A stretch of DNA of 64,000 nt, taken from positions 8,066-72,065 of the forward strand of contig CDMY01000461.1 of assembly GCA_001179505.1 (NCBI GenBank), given 5' to 3'. Below are positions 8,063 through 39,602 of the stretch, in pieces. Each line of letters opens with the position of its first letter. The first letter of the stretch is position 1. The DNA is from Vitrella brassicaformis CCMP3155 (lineage: Eukaryota > Protista > Chromerida). The notes under the pieces are model-generated. The model was not told the DNA's origin, made no database searches, and worked only from the letters and a program-made list of their open reading frames with translations. A program made the translations under genes and the position numbers.

Positions 8063-8403
8063 CTACACATCACCGGCAGCCGCCAAACCTGCACACAGAC
8101 ATAAGCACCGAGCACAGAACAGAGGCGGGGCGGGGAGGGCGTGTATGTATGTGTCTTCACGTGTGGCCATCCCTTGCCCTCGTGGCTCACTCGGTGCCTA
8201 CGTACGTTGTGTGCGCAGCAGTTTGATGCTCTTCCTGATGCTGGCGAGCTGGGCCTCCTTCTGCTGCATTTCCTGCCTCGTCGTCGGCTCCAACAACACG
8301 ATCATCACCGGATCATCATCATCACTCTCACAAGTTGGAGCAACCTTGCGCTTCTTCGAGGCTCCCGCGTTGCGCTCGCTGCTCAAGGCTCCCAAACGAC
8401 CTA

Positions 8404-15599: not shown

Positions 15600-17340
15600 C
15601 GCAGTCAGTTGTGGTGGGGTGGGCTTGCGTGGGGAGGGGAGGCGTTCTGTGCTGTGCTGTGCTGTGCCACCCACCAGTGGCAGGCAGCCCAGCCACACGT
15701 CTGCCTGTCTGTCTACCCACGCCCTTGCAATGCCTACCTGCATCCACGTAACACTCCCACAGACGGACGGACCGCTTCTCGTAGCTACCTACCTATCTCC
15801 GTCGGCCTGTCTGTCTGGCTGTCTGTCTGGCTGTCTTGGCTGATGAATGTGTGATGTGTTTTGATTCTGTCCGTCTGGCTGGCTGTCGGTCTGTATGTGT
15901 GTGAGCATGCGCCAGAGAGGGCACAACAGACACACACCCAAACACACACACACACTCACCACCAATCGAAGGGGAGGGAAGGAACGATGAATGGATCAAC
16001 GGCACCACACATGCCGTGACACTCACAGGGGGATGGATGGATGGATGGATGACACAGTCTGTCTGCATCGATTTATGGTGTCTGTTGTCTGTCGTGTGCT
16101 GCATGGGTGTGGTGTGCTGCAATGCAATGCACGTTTGGCTGACTGACCGATTTGTCGTCTGATGCCCTTTGTCTGTCTGGAGTGCACACTGTGATTTATG
16201 TCTGTCGTGGAGTGGACGCCTTTCTTTCTTTTTGATGCCGTTTAGTGTGTGTGCCGGTGCGGATGGATGGATGGATGGATGACTGTTGTGCGGGCGGGAG
16301 TGCCTTGCCAGGTCTGGACAGACAAGACGAGACGAGAAGGGATCGAGACATGCATGGGATGGCGGGAGGGGTGGTCTCACGTTTCCTTTCAGACGGCCAC
16401 ACGATGAGCGAGGCAGACAGACAGACAGACGGACTGACGGACGGACGGACAAATAGCTCGGCTGGTCGGTGGGATATATGGGTGGGAGATGAGATGGATG
16501 CGATGCCAAGTGTGGGGTGGTGGCTGTCGCGGGTTTCATTTTGTCGTCGTCGACCTATCGGTTTTTTTCGCCACGGATGGTTGGCCTGTCTTCTTTTGGA
16601 GAGTGTCCCTTGTTCTTCCTTTCTTGTGGGTGGGTGGGTGGGTGGGTGGATGGCTGTCGTCGTTTGTCGGTCGGTCTCTTTTGAGTGGGATGGAATACGC
16701 ACCGCAGTCAGTCAGCGCATTCCCTCGCCCGTCAGCCAGCCAGTCAGTCAGCCAGTCCACTGCTGCCCTGACCTTGCCGTTCTCCAGGAGATAGCGGGGG
16801 ATTGATGGGTAGCGGTGGATCGACGGGCAGGGCAGGGCAGGGCGGGGGCAATGCAATGCAATGCGGGGCAATGCGTGTTGGTGTTTGTTCGTTTTCTCCC
16901 CACACCGCCTCGCAATTAGTTAACCAGTCAGCCCATTACACACATGCTGCTTTTTCCTTCCTCTGGCCGCTTCCTTGAAGAGCTGAGGAGAGGGGCAGCG
17001 ATGGACAAAATCCATGAGGCTAAGGTTCAGTCTGTCGGTCGGTCGGATGGATGGATGGGGGCACGGGTGCAGTCAGTCAGTCAGTCAGTGTGTTTGCCGT
17101 CGGTCGTCGATCCGTTGGGGCCAGTCAGTCAAGGGAAGTCAGTGTGTCCGTCGATATGTATATCTTTCCCTTTCCCTTTGTCACTCTGTCTGTCGACTCA
17201 CTTGGTGTGTGGGTGCGGGGGGTCCACTCCGCGCTGTGATGTTTTCCTTTCCTTGTCGCTCGGCTCGGGTGCTTTGTTTGTTCGGTGACGCGTCTGTCTT
17301 CTTTTTGGAGAGAGAGTAAATGTGTCAAGCGCGTGAAATG
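15600..17340. repeat. Microsatellite-rich intergenic DNA ((GGAT)n, (GACA)n, (GTCA)n, (GGGT)n)
   Basis: Dense short tandem repeats. The listed ORFs here are only translations of those repeats. Confidence 0.8.
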
Positions 17341-19563: not shown

Positions 19564-20818
19564 CTACGCATCGCCAGCTGCAGGGCCACCTGATCACCCA
19601 AAAGACAACACAACACAACACAACACACCAATCAAGCCAAGCCCGTGTTGGTGCAGGAGTGAATGACGGGCGCGCCTCAGGTACCTACCTTGCTGCTGCA
19701 GCACTCGTACTATCTCCCTAACGGCAGCGAGCCTCCTCTCCTCACGCTCTATCTGCAGCTTCTTGCGGTCCGCCACAGGCCCGATCCGTGTGCCTGGCGG
19801 CTGGCGTCTGTCACACCCTGGGCGCTCCAACTCACAGTGCAGGAAGCCGATACGACCTGAATCAATCGGACATACACATACGCGCACAGGCCATCCATCC
19901 ATCCACTCTTTCTCCGGTGGGGTGCGTACGTGAGATGTCGTCCCTGGCGTCGTCCAGTCTGTCGATGACCGTCTGCCACCACGCAGCGGGCATCTCCCCC
20001 ATCAGCTTCTGCACCTTCCCCGCCCCCTGACCCGCCCCCTGGCCCGTACACCCCTCCATCACGGTCTCATACACCACCCACCCCACCACCTTGTTCTTGA
20101 TGGCCTTGTCGTTCTTCAAGGCCGGCTTCTCGCGCAGGACCAAGGCCAACACGCCGGCCAGGTGCAGGGCCTCACTCCCGCCGCCGATTGTGGGGTGAGA
20201 GGGGGGAGGGGCAGGCTGTGAGGGGGGACGGGCAGGCTGTGATGCGTACGTGTGGGCCGGCAGGCTGGGAAACTCGGTGGGGTATCCATCATCAGCAACG
20301 TCAAGGGGGGAGCGGGGAGTGGGAGTGGGGGAGGGGAGTGGGGAGTCGGGGAAGTGGGGGGGAGTGGGGACTATGGGGAGGGCCTTGCTTGGGGGGCCAA
20401 GAGGAGGTGAGTCGAAGTGCTCCATGATGCGGTTGAACAGCAAGTCGGCGTAGTTGTCCATCCCGAGGTAGTTACAGGCGACCCACAGGTGCAGCAGGCC
20501 CGTCTTGGCCGCCTCGTCGTCCGACTGGTCCGCCGCCGGCAGCGGGGTGGCTCCGGGGAGGCTGCGGATGTGCTCGTTGAGCTTGCGGCCATCGGTCATG
20601 CCGCGCAAAAAGGCGAAATTGATGAGCTCGCCGAACGTGTTGGGGTGAATGTTGGGCAGCGTGATCGTGTGGGTCTCCCGCTCAGTGCAGTTCATATGGC
20701 CCTCCAACATGCGCTTGAAAAACGGCGACATGCTCACGAGCAGCGACTTCTTCTCGTAGAAGACCTCCTTCTTGAGGCCGACAATGAGCTTCACCAAGAC
20801 CTCCTCCTTGTGCGCCAT
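19564..20818 (-). CDS. BTB/POZ-domain protein, paralogue 2, with a Pro-rich insertion
   Basis: MAHKEEVLVKLIVGLKKEVFYEKKSLLVSMSPFF.. is nearly identical to 8063-9232 at the N-terminus. Shares the C-terminal intron positions and ends GGPAAGDA*. Confidence 0.8.
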
Positions 20819-21308
20819 CCTGAGGCTGGGCGGCTACTCCGTCAGATGGTGCAAACCTGCAGGCAGACACCAACCACAGCAGCAACGACATCTATGGAAC
20901 GACATCCATGCATCCATCCAACGTCACGCATTCGTTGCTCACCCTTGGCGAGATGTCGCCGTCGTGGTTCGATATCAGCAGCAGTGCTGTGCTCGCTGCT
21001 GCCAGCTGTATGGCTCGGCTTACAGCAGAGAGGGGCACATGAGCGATGGCAGGTGGCGCAACGTCGTCAAAACAGAGGCTGGGCGGCTGGTTGACTCATC
21101 AGAAGCCGCCAAAACACCTTCCTGCGCCTGCCAGCTACTATCACCGGTCCCCGACCGGCTGCTCAGAGCTGCGAGCTTGGCGATCTTCCCTCGAAGGTGA
21201 TTTCTCTTTGGTTTGTCCTGTCTGTATGCCTGGTGCCTCACTTCTGAGAAAGCACATGTGAAAAACGACTTCGCCGCGTTCCATCTCTTCCCGGCTGCGC
21301 CATTCACA

Positions 21309-24300
21309 ATGGATCACACCAACGGGCTGCTGCACCATGCCGATGCGTTCGTCCGGCATGTCGGGTCACTGTCGCCGTCTGAGCAAGAAGCAGTGCTCAC
21401 GCAAGTGCTGGCCAGCCTGAAGGAGGGCGACTTCCAGGACGCGCTGCGGTCTGTCTACACGCTGCAGAGCTACAACGACGAGGGTGAAGATGTGCCGGCA
21501 CGGCTGTGGGATGTCTGGTCCGTGCCGATCTACTGCTTCATTCTCGACCTGTGCGAGTATGTGGTGGAGAAAAACCCGGTGAGCACACAGACACAGACAG
21601 ACAGACAGGGAGGGTCAGTGGTGCGTCCGGTGGTTCATTCACCGCTGCTGTGCTTGCTTTGTTTGCTTGTTTGCTTGTTTGCTTGTTTGCTTGTGTGTGT
21701 GTGTGTGTGTGTGTGTATCACTCAGGAGGCTCGTCCCGGCTCGACGGTGACGATAACTCTAGAGGAGAACTACTTTGCGTCGTATGTGCACATCTACACG
21801 CTGATTGAGAAGTGCCTCGTGCCGCACACCATCTACCGCGACACTGACAGCCGCCGCCGCATCATGAGCCTGGTGAGCCGCATGCTGGAGAACAGCAAGC
21901 GCCGGAAGAAGATGCGCTTCGCCCGGATGTTCGAGAACCGCGTCGTGACGCTCCTGTACTCGCTCTCCGGCATTTCGGTGAGTGAGCAGGGCGGGGAATC
22001 ACACATCACACAGCATACTATACCCGCTGGGTATGGTGGTCATTTCATTGGATCATGTGTGTGGTGTGTCGTGTGTGGTTGGTCAGAACATCTCGCGTCT
22101 GTTCCCGCCCAAGGCCAACCTGCGCAAGGCGCTCGAGCAGGAGATCAACACCTTCGTGGTCAGCAGCGCCGTCAAGGAGGATGACAGAGCCGCATGGGCC
22201 AAGGTACACACACACACATACACACACACACACACATACACACCAGCCACACCAGCCGCCACGTAACGTTACTTACTTTGCCCTCCTTCCTTGTCTTGTT
22301 TTGGCAGACGATTGGCCGCATCCGGGAGGCGGTGAGCACGCTGTTCCACACGGACGCGCTGCTCTACGGGTCGGTGGTGTCGGGCCTGGCCACCTCGGGC
22401 AGTGACGTCGACATGGTGGCGATCCTCCCCCGTGCAGAGGTGCAGAAGCTGATGGTGGGTGCGCCCAGCCACGCCTACATCGAGATGCACCGGCAGCACA
22501 AGTGGCACATCAGCAAGCGCATGATTGAGGAGGCCGACCTGCGGGCGCGGGCGTGCAACAAACTGGGGGAGTATCTCAAGGACGTGAGTGAGACGGGCGG
22601 GACGGAGGGAGGGAGGGATGGTGCAGACGGACACATCGCATCGATGTGTGTGTATGTGTGTGTGTGTCAGCATTACAGCGGTGACATGAAGGTCGACGTC
22701 GCCAGCACAGCGCGCGTGCCAGTGGTGCGCTGCTCGCCTTTGGTACGCAGGCCAACCACACACACTCACACACACACCAATCGCCACACCCTCACTCATG
22801 CGCCTGTGGGTCTGTCTGTGCGCGCAGCCGAGCTGGGGCAGTTCCAGCCAGGACACCTGGGGAGCGGCTTCAACTGAGTGGGGATCGTCCAGCTGGGGTC
22901 CCCCCAAGACGAGCAGCAACGGCAGCGACGACAGCCGAAAGGTACCCACACGCACACACACATGACGGGCACACGACGCACAGACGCATGTGCGCGTGCG
23001 TGCGTGTGTGTGTGTGTGTGGTCAGGAGGATGGCAAGGCCGCTGGTGCGGTTGACATCACGTTCGAGAACCCTTTGGGCATCCACAACTCTAAGCTCCTG
23101 CGCGCCTACTTCGAATCAGCACCACTCGTCAGGAAACTCGGTGAGCAGACGCATGGTGCTCTCATGTCATGTGTGTGCGGCACACACATGACGTCACAAC
23201 TCGACCGGCAGAGATGTGCAGGTAATGTGTGTGCGTCTGCCTGTGTGGGTGTGTGGCGGTCTGTCTGTCAGCGTTGTTCGTGAAGAAGTGGGTGAAGGCC
23301 CGCGGTTTGTGTGACACAACTAATGGGTATTTGTCGTCGTACGCCTGGTCTCTCCTCGTGGTCTTCTACATGCAAGTCAGGTGAGACTCGTGAGATAGAC
23401 AGTCGGCCTAACTGAGTGACAAGGGCACACACACACACACACACACCAGCTCCGGCTCAATCATGTGTGCCTCTGTCTCAATGTGTGTGTGTGTGTGTCA
23501 CAGGCGTCCCCCTCTGCTGCCGAATCTGCAGAAGCCTCGTGACGGCGGTGCTGCCGGCGAGGAGATCGTCGAGACCTACGACTTCCTCAAACACGCTGAC
23601 ATCAAACACAACGTCTGCAGCCACACACACGCCCCACACATCCATCCATCCATCCATCCTACCTTTTCATCAGGTGTGGTTCGACGATCCGCCGCTGGAC
23701 GAGTCGCGCCCGTCGTCCCGCGCCACGCAGCTGAGCAGCTCCTTCCCCTCGGAGCGTGTCTCGTCGTCCATGTCGACGGGCGTGCCGAGTGATGTCGAGG
23801 GCGAGGAGGCCTCAGAGGCGGAGAGCGAGCGTGAGAGGCTGTGCAAGGTGGAGGCCTATGTCAAGGACGCCAAAGACGAGCTCGAAATGCTCAGAATCAA
23901 CAGGTGGGTGGGAGAGAAGGGTGGGTGAGGAGAGGGAGAGGGAGAGGAGGGTGGGGTGCATGCATTGCAGTGCATGGGTGGGTGTCTTGTTGGTCGCTCG
24001 TTCCTTCAGACGTCGTATCAATTCATACGCCGGCAACGTCGAGGGCCTCACACTGCCCGACCTCCTCTATGAGTTCTTCAAGTGAGCGACCCACAAACCA
24101 AACCCACACACAGACACATCACATAACATCCTCCCCTCTCCATCTGATCGGCACTGCATGGATATCGTCAGGTTCTACGCCTGCCAGTTCAACGCGCACA
24201 AGTGCATCGCCTCCATCCGGCTCGCCCCGGCCCTCATGTCCAAGCCCGAGTACATTCGCATGTACCGCCGCGAGCGTCAGTACACCAAGCGCCCCGACTC

Positions 24301-26335
24301 GGACGGGCCAGCCTGCCCCGACATCCAGGTTGCCAAGAGCACCCTCTTCAGCGACTTCGCCAACATCGGTGGCGGCCAGATCGACGAGAGCGGTGACGAG
24401 AAGGAGGAGATGGACAGAGGGGAGGGGCAGGAGGACGGTGGTTTCGATAAGGAGGGGACGCCTGCAGATGTTGGAGACAAGGAGGAGGTGAGCGACGCGG
24501 AAGAAAGAGTGAACTTCATCCATATCATCGGTCCGTCTCTGTGTGTCGCTGTGTCTGCAGAAGGGTGGTTGCGAGGAGGAGGGGGAGGCAGAGAACCGCG
24601 AGGAGAGTGTGGAGCCGCCCATGTTCCTCTCCCTCGACTATTGGAAACGATTCCAGGTGGGCACATGCACAGTGTACACACGCGCCGCGCCCAGATGATG
24701 CACTGCACACGACAGAGCGCTATGGTCACTCACCTGCTGCCGCATGTATGTGTGTCTTGCTTGTCAGGACATGTGTGTTGAAGATCCCATTGAGACCGAT
24801 CGCATCCTCGCCTGCGACCGACAGGTACGGTACCTACCTGACCTGCATTGATCCATCTGCCCACCTGATGCACGTGTCCCCTTCGCCCGCCTTCGCTTCT
24901 CCAGGGGCAGGAGCGCATGGCGTTTGAGTTCCGTCGTGCCCTCATGCTGCTCGCCACCGGCCAGCCCATCAGCCGCATTGCCGAGGAGTTCAACCCGCCC
25001 GTCGACCCCAATCGCCGTGGCGCACCCCGTGGTCCAGATGAGACCGTCCCGCACTATCCCCCCTCACCGGACATGCTGCTGCCGCCGCCCGAGGCTGTTG
25101 TGCAGCCACAGCCCGCCCCGTCCCCGTCGCCCCCACGCAAGGAAAAGGACAAGGACAAGGAGAAAGACAAGGACAAGGAGCCCAAGGAGAAGCAGCAGGT
25201 CCAGACCAAGAAGGCCCCTGCGGCTGCCAGCGCTTCTTCCGGCAGCAAGCAGGGCGGCAAGGCGGACAAGGGCATGCAGAAGGGCAAGGCCTCGGCCACA
25301 GCGAGGCAGCAGCCATTCCCTTCTCTCGTCTCTGCTCCCCAGCCTACCACCCCTCCCCAGCCCCCTCCCCCTCCATCCATGCCACATCCGGCTCGTGGTC
25401 TGTTCGGTCCTTCGCCCTCGCCCTCGCCCCCTGGCAGAATGGCGGGCCGCGGCATTCTTCCTGCCGGCATGGGTCATGGCGTGCCCCCTCAGCCGCAGCA
25501 AAGCTACCCTCCCCCGACCATCATCAGCCCCCCACCCTCGCTGATCGCCCCACCCCCACAGCAGCAGCAGTACTACAACGTGTCGCAGGCCCAAGGCCTC
25601 ATGGACCAGCTCATGGGCATGCAGCAGCAACAGCAGCCCCTGCAGCAGCAGCAGCAGCAGCAGCAGCCGGCGGGAGATGGCGGGACGTCCAAGCGCAAGA
25701 AGGGTGGTGCTTGGCAGGTGCCGTCGCCACCACAGCCGCTGGCGGGTCAGGAGCCCCCATTCCGTCCCGTATCCTTGCAGACGGTGCCTGAGCCGGAGCC
25801 ATTCGTCCGCTTCACGTCCCACACCTCCACCCTACCCCCTCCCCCATCCACCGAGACCTCTGTCGCGCCACAGAAGAAGCCACGAGGCAAGACCACGAAC
25901 CGCTTCAGGCAGCAGCAGCAGCTCAACGACATCTCAGAGGAGCCCGTTGATGAAGTTGCAGTCACCAAGAGCGACGCCGGCGACCGAGCTGCCGAGTCCT
26001 TGTATGCCACCCCCGAGCGGCCGCAGGGTGGGGGTGGTCTCAATCGGGCCATGTCTGAGCGGGGCAGTGTGTCGCCGGGTCCGATCCTGCTGCGGCATGC
26101 GCATGGAGTGTTCGCCGGCATGGGTGTGAAGCCGAGCGAGGGCAAGGAGGGCGAGGATGGGGTGAACAAGGAGGGTGAGGACGGTGGTGTGAGCAGAGGC
26201 GTGTCGTCGAGTGCAAGTGCATCAGGGAGTGCAGAGGGCGGGGAGGGAGAGGCCAAGGGGAAGGGCAGAAGGTCTGGTGGCTGGTTGTCGTTCTTCGGTG
26301 GTGGTGGTGGTGGTGGCAAGAAGGGCAAAGAGTGA
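21309..26335 (+). CDS. Cid1/TUTase-family RNA terminal nucleotidyltransferase with PAP-associated domain and long Pro/Gln/Gly-rich C-terminus
   Basis: Contains YGSVVSGLATSGSDVDMV (GS..DxD), ARVPVV, VDITFENPLGIHNSKLL, FVKKWVKARGL..GYLSSYAWSLLVVFYMQ, LLYEFFKFY and the nucleotide-recognition motif VEDPIETDR. Many GT-AG introns. Confidence 0.92.
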
Positions 26336-26981
26336 GTCTTGAGTGAGTCAGAGAGTCATGCTTGAGTGATACAGGCACCATACACACAGATCATCAGAGT
26401 GAGACACTGCCTTTGTTTGAGTGAGAGGTGGGTGCGTTGGGGATGGGTGCATCGGGTTGATCCTGATTGAGTTGTTCGTTGCAAGGAGACTCTTTCGTGT
26501 GTTGACGTGTTGTTCCTGTCCATCATGCGCATGAGTGTGTTCGTCGGATTCGTCGATCCAACGAAACACGCTTGTACGCACGATGGTGAGGGACTGCACT
26601 GCGACACGTCGGACCGCTCAACACGTCACGACTGCCGCCTGGTCGGGAAACCCTAACAGATGGCCCCAAACCAGCAGCTCGCACTCCCTTTCGCTCGGTC
26701 CTCAACTTGTTCGCGACGGCGCCTGGCGGCTCTATGCCCCGGATACTCACATGGGGAGAGTGAGGGCAAGTACACAACCAGCCCCGGCCCCACCTACAGA
26801 AGAACAAGGTGATGAACGTCAAGGCCCATCCATCAACACTGGTCTCTGTCCACGGTGCCGTCGAGTAGCCACAGAGCCTATCGAGCGCATCGTCATTGCA
26901 ACTGGGCTGAGAGGCTCGGTGTTGCGGCCTCGCCACTGCAGTGGGCCTTGCCGTCTGTGAGTGAGTGGAGGAAGGATAAGG

Positions 26982-39063: not shown

Positions 39064-39602
39064 CCTCTCGCACTGCCTATGGAGTGGGGGCGAGGGAGCT
39101 GGTGGTGGTGGTCAAGGTGGTGGTGGCGGGGAGTGAGGGTGAGGAAGAGGTGGACGAGAGCGGGCTAAGGGAGCTGCCACTGCGGGCTAAGAGGAGGACG
39201 ATGAAGGGGATCAGGACCAAGGGTTTGGGTTCGTTTTCCGCACAAATGTCGGCCATCCACCCCTGCAGCCGGGATGCGCTGACATGGGCAGGTCGCACGG
39301 TCTTCCTGATGGCGTTGGGGAATGGCAGGCCTTGATAGGGGAAGAGGAAGAAGAACAATGGCTTTCCTCCAATGGGAAAAAAAGAGAAAACATGCGTCTC
39401 CATTTTTTCTCTTTGCCGTCTCGATTCTCGCCAGTACCGATTCTCGCCCAAAGAGTGACGCCGTTGTCGGAATCGTGTGCCACCAGCCAGCCGACCACAT
39501 GGTAAGACGAAAACAAAACAAGATCACGCCGCCACAATGTCATTCCGCCATGCCTTCAACGCAATGGATGGTGAGGACCGTCAGATGGAGGAAGGAAAGG
39601 AT

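Follow-up and report, generated by a model that had tools for sequence, protein, structure and literature searches.

Several terminal nucleotidyltransferases, among them HESO1, URT1, MUT68, Cid12, CDE-1, RDE-3 and the ciliate Rdn1/2, act on Argonaute-bound small RNAs or in RNA-dependent RNA polymerase (RdRP) complexes. Other proteins, such as GW182/TNRC6, NRPE1, SPT5L/KTF1, Tas3 and the ciliate Wag1/CnjB, carry Argonaute (AGO) hooks, in which tryptophan-glycine (WG) pairs are reiterated in a Gly/Ser-rich, aliphatic-poor and disordered context. AGO-binding WG/GW domains are rich in Gly, Ser and Trp, and Leu, Ile, Met, Tyr and Cys are the residues least expected in them (Karlowski et al. 2010, PMC2910046). 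Here, we describe a gene of the chromerid Vitrella brassicaformis CCMP3155 in which the two may be combined. It lies in a window of 64,000 nucleotides, which is the whole stretch of DNA that was analysed (assembly GCA_001179505.1, contig CDMY01000461.1, forward-strand positions 8,066 to 72,065; coordinates below are those of the window), and is predicted to encode a terminal RNA nucleotidyltransferase (TENT) with a 38-residue WG exon in its catalytic domain. We tentatively interpret this exon, the sixth of 15 (22828-22941, + strand), as an Argonaute hook within a tailing enzyme, a reading that we consider possible and short of probable.

Exon 6 translates as PSWGSSSQDTWGAASTEWGSSSWGPPKTSSNGSDDSRK. 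Upstream it is bordered by ...gcgcgcag and downstream by gtaccc, and the reading frame enters and leaves it in phase 0. Frame, splice sites and spliced transcript contigs together bear out the 114-nt, AG..GT-bounded exon of the original prediction, and its neighbors are also as first described, with exon 5 (22671-22742, + strand) forming a strand that ends in ...ARVPVVRCSPL ahead of the insertion and exon 7 (23026-23140, + strand) beginning with EDGKAAGAVDITFENPLG. The 38 codons specify 12 Ser, 5 Gly, 4 Trp, 3 Pro, 3 Asp and 3 Thr, with no Leu, Ile, Val, Met, Phe, Tyr or Cys at all, and Trp is the only aromatic residue. The WG pairs are found at residues 3, 11, 18 and 23, in the units SWGSSS, TWGAAS, EWGSSS and SWGPPK. 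This is exactly the peptide in which four WG pairs had been counted within 22 residues on a Ser/Gly/Thr/Asp background. Its composition is that of published AGO-binding WG/GW platforms, and from it we infer that the loop is disordered and exposed at the protein surface.

The WG pattern of exon 6 is non-random. A six-frame test of the window returned exon 6 as the sole stop-free cluster of at least four G-adjacent Trp within 25 residues, compared with 0.03 such clusters expected from block-shuffled windows. Outside exon 6, Trp is the rarest residue of the protein (10 of 1,169 residues, or 0.86%). Given that composition, the probability of finding at least four WG in a 38-residue stretch is ~1.7e-8, or ~2e-5 across all positions of the protein. 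The pairing itself is also unusual, as Gly followed all four Trp in only 10 cases when the residues of the exon were shuffled 200,000 times. Elsewhere in the window, the stop-free segments 16578-16653, 20266-20382 and 39085-39132 hold three G-adjacent Trp or a high WG/GW score; all three are located within GGTGGG-type simple sequence.

The resemblance to known hooks was scored with the plant matrix in Table 1 of Karlowski et al. (2010; PMC2910046) and a simplified boundary rule. Residues 2-36 of exon 6 reach a dos score of 35.7 half-bits, an approximate value that falls in the "medium" class (25-150) and corresponds to P ~1e-4 on an Arabidopsis null. The predictor is in this respect consistent with the hook that had been proposed, and the score is the highest among the 342 WG/GW-bearing stop-free segments of the window. 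The second-best segment, with 35.3 half-bits and a single GW, forms the Gly-rich C-terminus of the host protein (26141-26326, ...GRRSGGWLSFFGGGGGGGKKG), which is probably a false positive caused by Gly bias.

The host protein was classified by Pfam and PDB searches made exon by exon. By these criteria it is a predicted Pol-beta/Cid1-type TENT with the GS...DVD...D triad intact. The nucleotidyltransferase core is encoded by exon 4 (22308-22583, + strand), which carries YGSVVSGLATSGSDVDMVAIL, that is, the hG[GS] helix-turn motif followed by DxD (YGS...SDVDMV, including the first two catalytic Asp). In Pfam, this exon is matched by NTP_transf_2 (E=1.1e-7; 32.5 bits, where the cut-off is 21) and by MTPAP-like_central (PF22600; 2.6e-5, model positions 35-71). 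Exon 7 contains AVDITFEN, the strand of the third catalytic Asp, and matches positions 117-138 of the 139 in PF22600 (E=9e-5). In the PDB it aligns weakly, at the D-I-[TS] strand, with Trypanosoma TUT4 (TbTUT4, 2ikf, E=0.024) and human TUT7 (5w0b, E=0.3); PDB sequence searches with exons 4, 5 and 6 returned no match. A putative PAP-associated/central domain would be split over six exons, and at the level of single exons Pfam gives a weak PAP_central match (E=0.026) on exon 8 (23272-23380, + strand; LSSYAWSLLVVFYMQV), where the central/fingers domain would start and which is supported by contig joints. Exons 9-15 are blank in Pfam, as are the first 213 residues and the Pro/Gln/Lys-rich tail of 476 residues.

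Since all three catalytic carboxylates are present, the enzyme is apparently active. Of the original label, a Cid1/terminal uridylyltransferase (TUTase), the Cid1/Pol-beta-type nucleotidyltransferase is upheld by Pfam and the triad; the UTP specificity is not, as nothing examined points to a preference for UTP. Exon 14, of 19 residues, reads DMCVEDPIETDRILACDRQ and continues after EDP with IETDRILA, in which no His is seen by eye. In Cid1, the UTP-selecting His (His336) belongs to the nucleotide-recognition loop after EDPF, and the lack of a His in exon 14 would argue against a UTP-selective enzyme.

Within the palm domain, exon 6 occupies the hairpin that connects the ARVPVV strand to the strand of the third Asp, and it ends 9 residues before that Asp. 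With the NTP_transf_2/MTPAP-like_central core (exon 4) on one side and the third-Asp strand (exon 7) on the other, it is an insertion inside the catalytic domain, as originally proposed. Such proximity to the active site is also what would be expected of a regulatory or substrate-contacting loop, in which phosphorylation of Ser/Thr, or stacking of Trp on RNA bases, tunes substrate choice or processivity; 15 of the 38 residues are Ser or Thr. A precedent of a kind is the proline-rich region (PRR) of human TUT1, a kinase target that is disordered and also inserted in the palm domain. However, deletion of the PRR barely alters the kinetics of TUT1 (PMC5467268), and neither phosphorylation nor base stacking explains the strict pairing of W with G, so that we consider a loop of this type distinctly unlikely.

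Joining exon 5 directly to exon 7 gives a hairpin of ordinary length for the family, in which the length of this site is variable. It is conceivable, therefore, that the insertion is neutral, with a Ser/Gly-rich segment having expanded in a permissive hairpin on the palm surface and the WG pairs being partnerless relics of an old W-G-S-S-S-like duplication. The four units do look related, and low-complexity inserts occur elsewhere in the protein as well, for example the acidic runs of exons 10 and 12 or the Pro/Gln/Lys tail. In addition, Gly/Ser-rich segments are a source of false positives for the predictor (PMC2910046), and no relatives bearing the loop were found among representative proteins or metagenome contigs. 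The Gly codons of the four WG units differ (GGC, GGA, GGA and GGT), the Ser codons differ too, and Tandem Repeats Finder detected no repeat over the motifs, the only repeat being a 9-nt one, GACGACAGC, at the 3' end of the exon. Thus, the pattern is not a fresh microsatellite, an origin that the blank over the units rules out. If the units arose by duplication, the event would be old, and W-G would have been retained as the remainder drifted, which we take as modest evidence of constraint. Disordered segments that are free of constraint usually lose Trp, a scarce residue elsewhere in the protein, yet four were kept here, each with its Gly, while synonymous and neighboring positions diverged. 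On balance, a neutral insertion appears somewhat doubtful.

The gene was rebuilt from the window sequence and spliced public transcript contigs. Four public runs, of the eight that match the stretch, were compared over 21200-26400. Two of these runs, X6 and X7, come from different studies and provide contigs of 3,071 and 3,025 nt, respectively, which are both spliced at eleven listed GT..AG introns of the model and are therefore transcript assemblies. The joint of exon 5 to exon 6 (22742->22828) is listed in both. The following joint, 22941->23026, is unlisted in the contig comparison, from which rows falling in the CA/GT repeats of these introns were dropped. The number of contig letters accounts for it: 467 of them separate the piece that ends at 22199 from the one that starts at 23027, a number that equals 4 + 276 (exon 4) + 72 (exon 5) + 114 (exon 6) + 1, instead of the 353 expected if exon 6 were skipped or the 551 expected if intron 6 were retained. 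Thus, exon 6 is included in full. The same arithmetic covers exons 9-11 and the removal of the 61-nt intron 9 (414 = 3+109+230+72). In the last exon, a CAG/Gln repeat (25560-25680) breaks the assemblies of both runs, so that contigs end at 25627 and restart at 25680.

Inclusion of exon 6 is constitutive, or at least predominantly so. The exon is therefore used in transcripts, as had been anticipated, and it is the label of an alternatively spliced cassette that finds no support, as the contigs of both studies hold the inclusion form and no skip joint (22742->23026) is listed in either, with the proviso that contigs drop rare variants. Skipping would yield a hook-less isoform with a canonical hairpin, and splicing could then act as a switch between pathways, an idea that may be combined with any other reading of the loop. 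A length of 114 nt in phase 0/0 means that a skip would keep the frame and restore a loop length typical of the family, and the strong hairpin of intron 6 (see below) could modulate the use of the splice sites. However, exons 1-6 are all in phase 0/0, with lengths that are multiples of three (270, 252, 117, 276, 72 and 114), so the symmetry of exon 6 is not distinctive for a cassette. Together with the inclusion seen in both studies, this makes a regulated cassette very unlikely.

Intron 6 (22942-23025, + strand; 84 nt), directly 3' of the WG exon, folds over almost its full length into a near-perfect hairpin, in which a CA-rich 5' half pairs with a GU-rich 3' half and which brings both splice sites together. 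Its minimum free energy is -53.8 kcal/mol, compared with -27.0 for shuffles (z = -9.3). Introns 1, 7 and 8 are also unusually stable (z of -3 to -4; in intron 8 this includes 23429-23498), and introns 3, 9, 11 and 14 are not. A microRNA in intron 6 was considered and rejected: the Rfam matches to mir-3149 are sub-threshold (33.6 bits, where the gathering score is 100) and occur on both strands because of the CA/TG palindrome.

How might such a loop act in a tailing enzyme? In the reading that we favor, exon 6 would add a disordered, Ser/Gly-rich loop of 38 residues with four WG pairs to the hairpin before the third catalytic Asp, and this loop would serve as a multivalent tryptophan docking platform. 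Exposed Trp residues in flexible surroundings of small residues could be inserted into the hydrophobic Trp pocket of a partner, for which the best candidate would be an Argonaute/PIWI protein of the same cell. Such docking may recruit the enzyme to small RNAs or to the targets of small RNAs. Adjacent Trp in exon 6 are 8, 7 and 5 residues apart, and non-adjacent pairs are separated by 12-20. A separation of 12-20 residues reportedly suffices to span two pockets, according to structural work on hAgo2 and GW182.

Argonaute is not the only protein with Trp pockets. The deadenylase complexes CCR4-NOT and PAN2-PAN3 bind Trp motifs of the GW182 silencing domain, and 3' tailing enzymes act on deadenylated mRNAs. 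The loop could be a platform for another pocket partner, such as CNOT9/NOT1 of CCR4-NOT or PAN2-PAN3, or a sticker that drives the enzyme into RNA granules. The arguments from composition and disorder apply here as they do to a hook, and the sequence does not discriminate between partners; however, in GW182 the Trp motifs that bind deadenylases lie further apart and are not always WG. GW182 proteins connect AGO to both PAN2-PAN3 and CCR4-NOT (PMC4615383). We regard a platform or sticker of this kind as quite unlikely.

Several observations weigh against an Argonaute hook in exon 6. The platform is small, with four motifs in 22 residues and adjacent Trp just 5-8 residues apart. Pfam is blank on the exon for Ago_hook and for every other family, and the exon has no match in the PDB. 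Gly/Ser-rich low-complexity proteins produce false positives with the predictor, for example hornerin, which has eight GW (Karlowski et al., PMC2910046). No orthologue or paralogue was found in representative proteins, in metagenome contigs or in the ESM Atlas. An HMMER scan of exon 4 against 1.84 billion representative proteins gave three matches, all to unrelated repeat proteins; the gene's own product was absent as well, so this blank says little about eukaryotic orthologues, and either the library does not include the organism's proteome or exon 4 has diverged strongly. In metagenome contigs, exon 4 had 278 pattern matches, of which 0 were confirmed, and the search for look-alikes of the WG exon in the ESM Atlas returned no usable match. 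Trp pockets are not known to be general among PIWI-type Argonautes, which would count against a hook if the partner belonged to that clade. Finally, the link of the enzyme to small RNAs is assumed. It is from composition that we infer both the partner of the loop and the pathway in which it would act.

The remainder of the gene is organized as follows. Its 15 exons, all on the + strand, start with the ATG at 21309 and finish with the TGA whose last base is 26335; they contain 3,636 nt of coding sequence (1,211 codons plus stop), and the introns are all GT..AG. Exon 1 (21309-21578), with the start codon and 90 codons, is present in the spliced contigs X6 and X7 and is blank in Pfam. Exon 2 (21726-21977; 84 codons), also found in contigs, is without a significant Pfam match. 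It is joined to exon 3 (22087-22203; 39 codons) at 21977->22087 in X1, X6 and X7. Exons 9-14 (23504-23612, 23674-23903, 24010-24081, 24172-24487, 24561-24656 and 24768-24824), which follow from contig joints and arithmetic, are predicted to encode the remaining catalytic module with its acidic low-complexity inserts. Exon 15 (24905-26335) encodes the disordered tail of 476 codons up to the TGA stop, and it includes both GGAW and SGGW, where GGAW and GGW had been noted at the C-terminus. Intron 1 (147 nt) is in frame and, by eye, stop-free, and intron 4 (87 nt) is in frame and stop-free. The latter, together with the divisibility of exons 1-6 by three, explains a mechanically called open reading frame of 227 amino acids (22194-22877) that spans intron 3, exon 4, intron 4 and exon 5 and runs through intron 5.

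If the loop binds Argonaute, the enzyme would be the first known case of an Ago hook built into a tailing enzyme. This would imply that hooks can occupy a loop of a catalytic domain, and not just a terminal disordered tail, and small-RNA effector complexes would be linked directly and physically to 3' tailing in a lineage that is sister to the apicomplexan parasites and in which RNA silencing is poorly known; we found no paper on chromerid Argonautes or RNA silencing. If the loop does not bind, exon 6 is just another low-complexity insertion, here in an enzyme that evolves fast and belongs to a large family. A broader scenario, which we consider rather unlikely, is that chromerid enzymes that make or modify small RNAs each have a short WG hook of their own. 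A GW182-like adaptor would then not be needed, as an Argonaute/PIWI hub could directly recruit the activities of tailing, amplification and 3' methylation, and here a hook beside the active site could present the 3' end of the bound RNA.

An Argonaute hook in a tailing enzyme, which the composition of exon 6 makes plausible, is not described in the literature that we searched: no paper was found on a uridylyltransferase or nucleotidyltransferase that itself has an Ago hook or GW motif. In this respect, the original remark that no such architecture was known still stands. It stands less well for the underlying idea, because a 2025 preprint on the pockets of Arabidopsis AGO1 searched the plant terminal nucleotidyltransferases (TNTases) for Trp that lie in disordered regions and might be AGO1 pocket ligands; HESO1 and NTP8 were kept, after which the study turned to SGS3 (10.1101/2025.10.18.683247).

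Comparison with the known systems places exon 6 between several of them. With the hooks of GW182/TNRC6, NRPE1, SPT5L/KTF1, Tas3 and Wag1/CnjB it shares reiterated WG in a predicted disordered context poor in aliphatics, as expressed in its "medium" dos score. GW182-type hooks are located in a long terminal disordered region, whereas exon 6 has its four motifs within 22 residues and in an internal loop of a folded catalytic domain. The small-RNA TENTs listed at the outset belong to the same enzyme superfamily as the host; the likeness is at the superfamily level, and no paper was found describing an Ago hook in any of them. Plant HESO1 and NTP8 have Trp in disordered regions, which were not pursued as AGO1 pocket ligands (10.1101/2025.10.18.683247).

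In its position, exon 6 resembles the PRR of human TUT1/Star-PAP, as both are disordered insertions in a palm domain (the disorder of exon 6 being predicted from composition). The mutant lacking the PRR retains 96% of the wild-type catalytic efficiency (PMC5467268), thus disordered insertions in the palm are tolerated. The two are not insertions in the same loop: the PRR (residues 235-304) follows the DxD strand with Asp216/218, whereas exon 6 precedes the third Asp, and the PRR is Pro-rich where exon 6 is rich in Trp-Gly and Ser. Arabidopsis SGS3 differs in being a non-enzyme with N-terminal motifs and genetic support. Still, in SGS3 a few GW/WG pairs in a disordered segment are proposed to engage the Trp pockets of AGO1 together with a nearby acidic patch (10.1101/2025.10.18.683247), and exon 6 also ends in an acidic DD patch.

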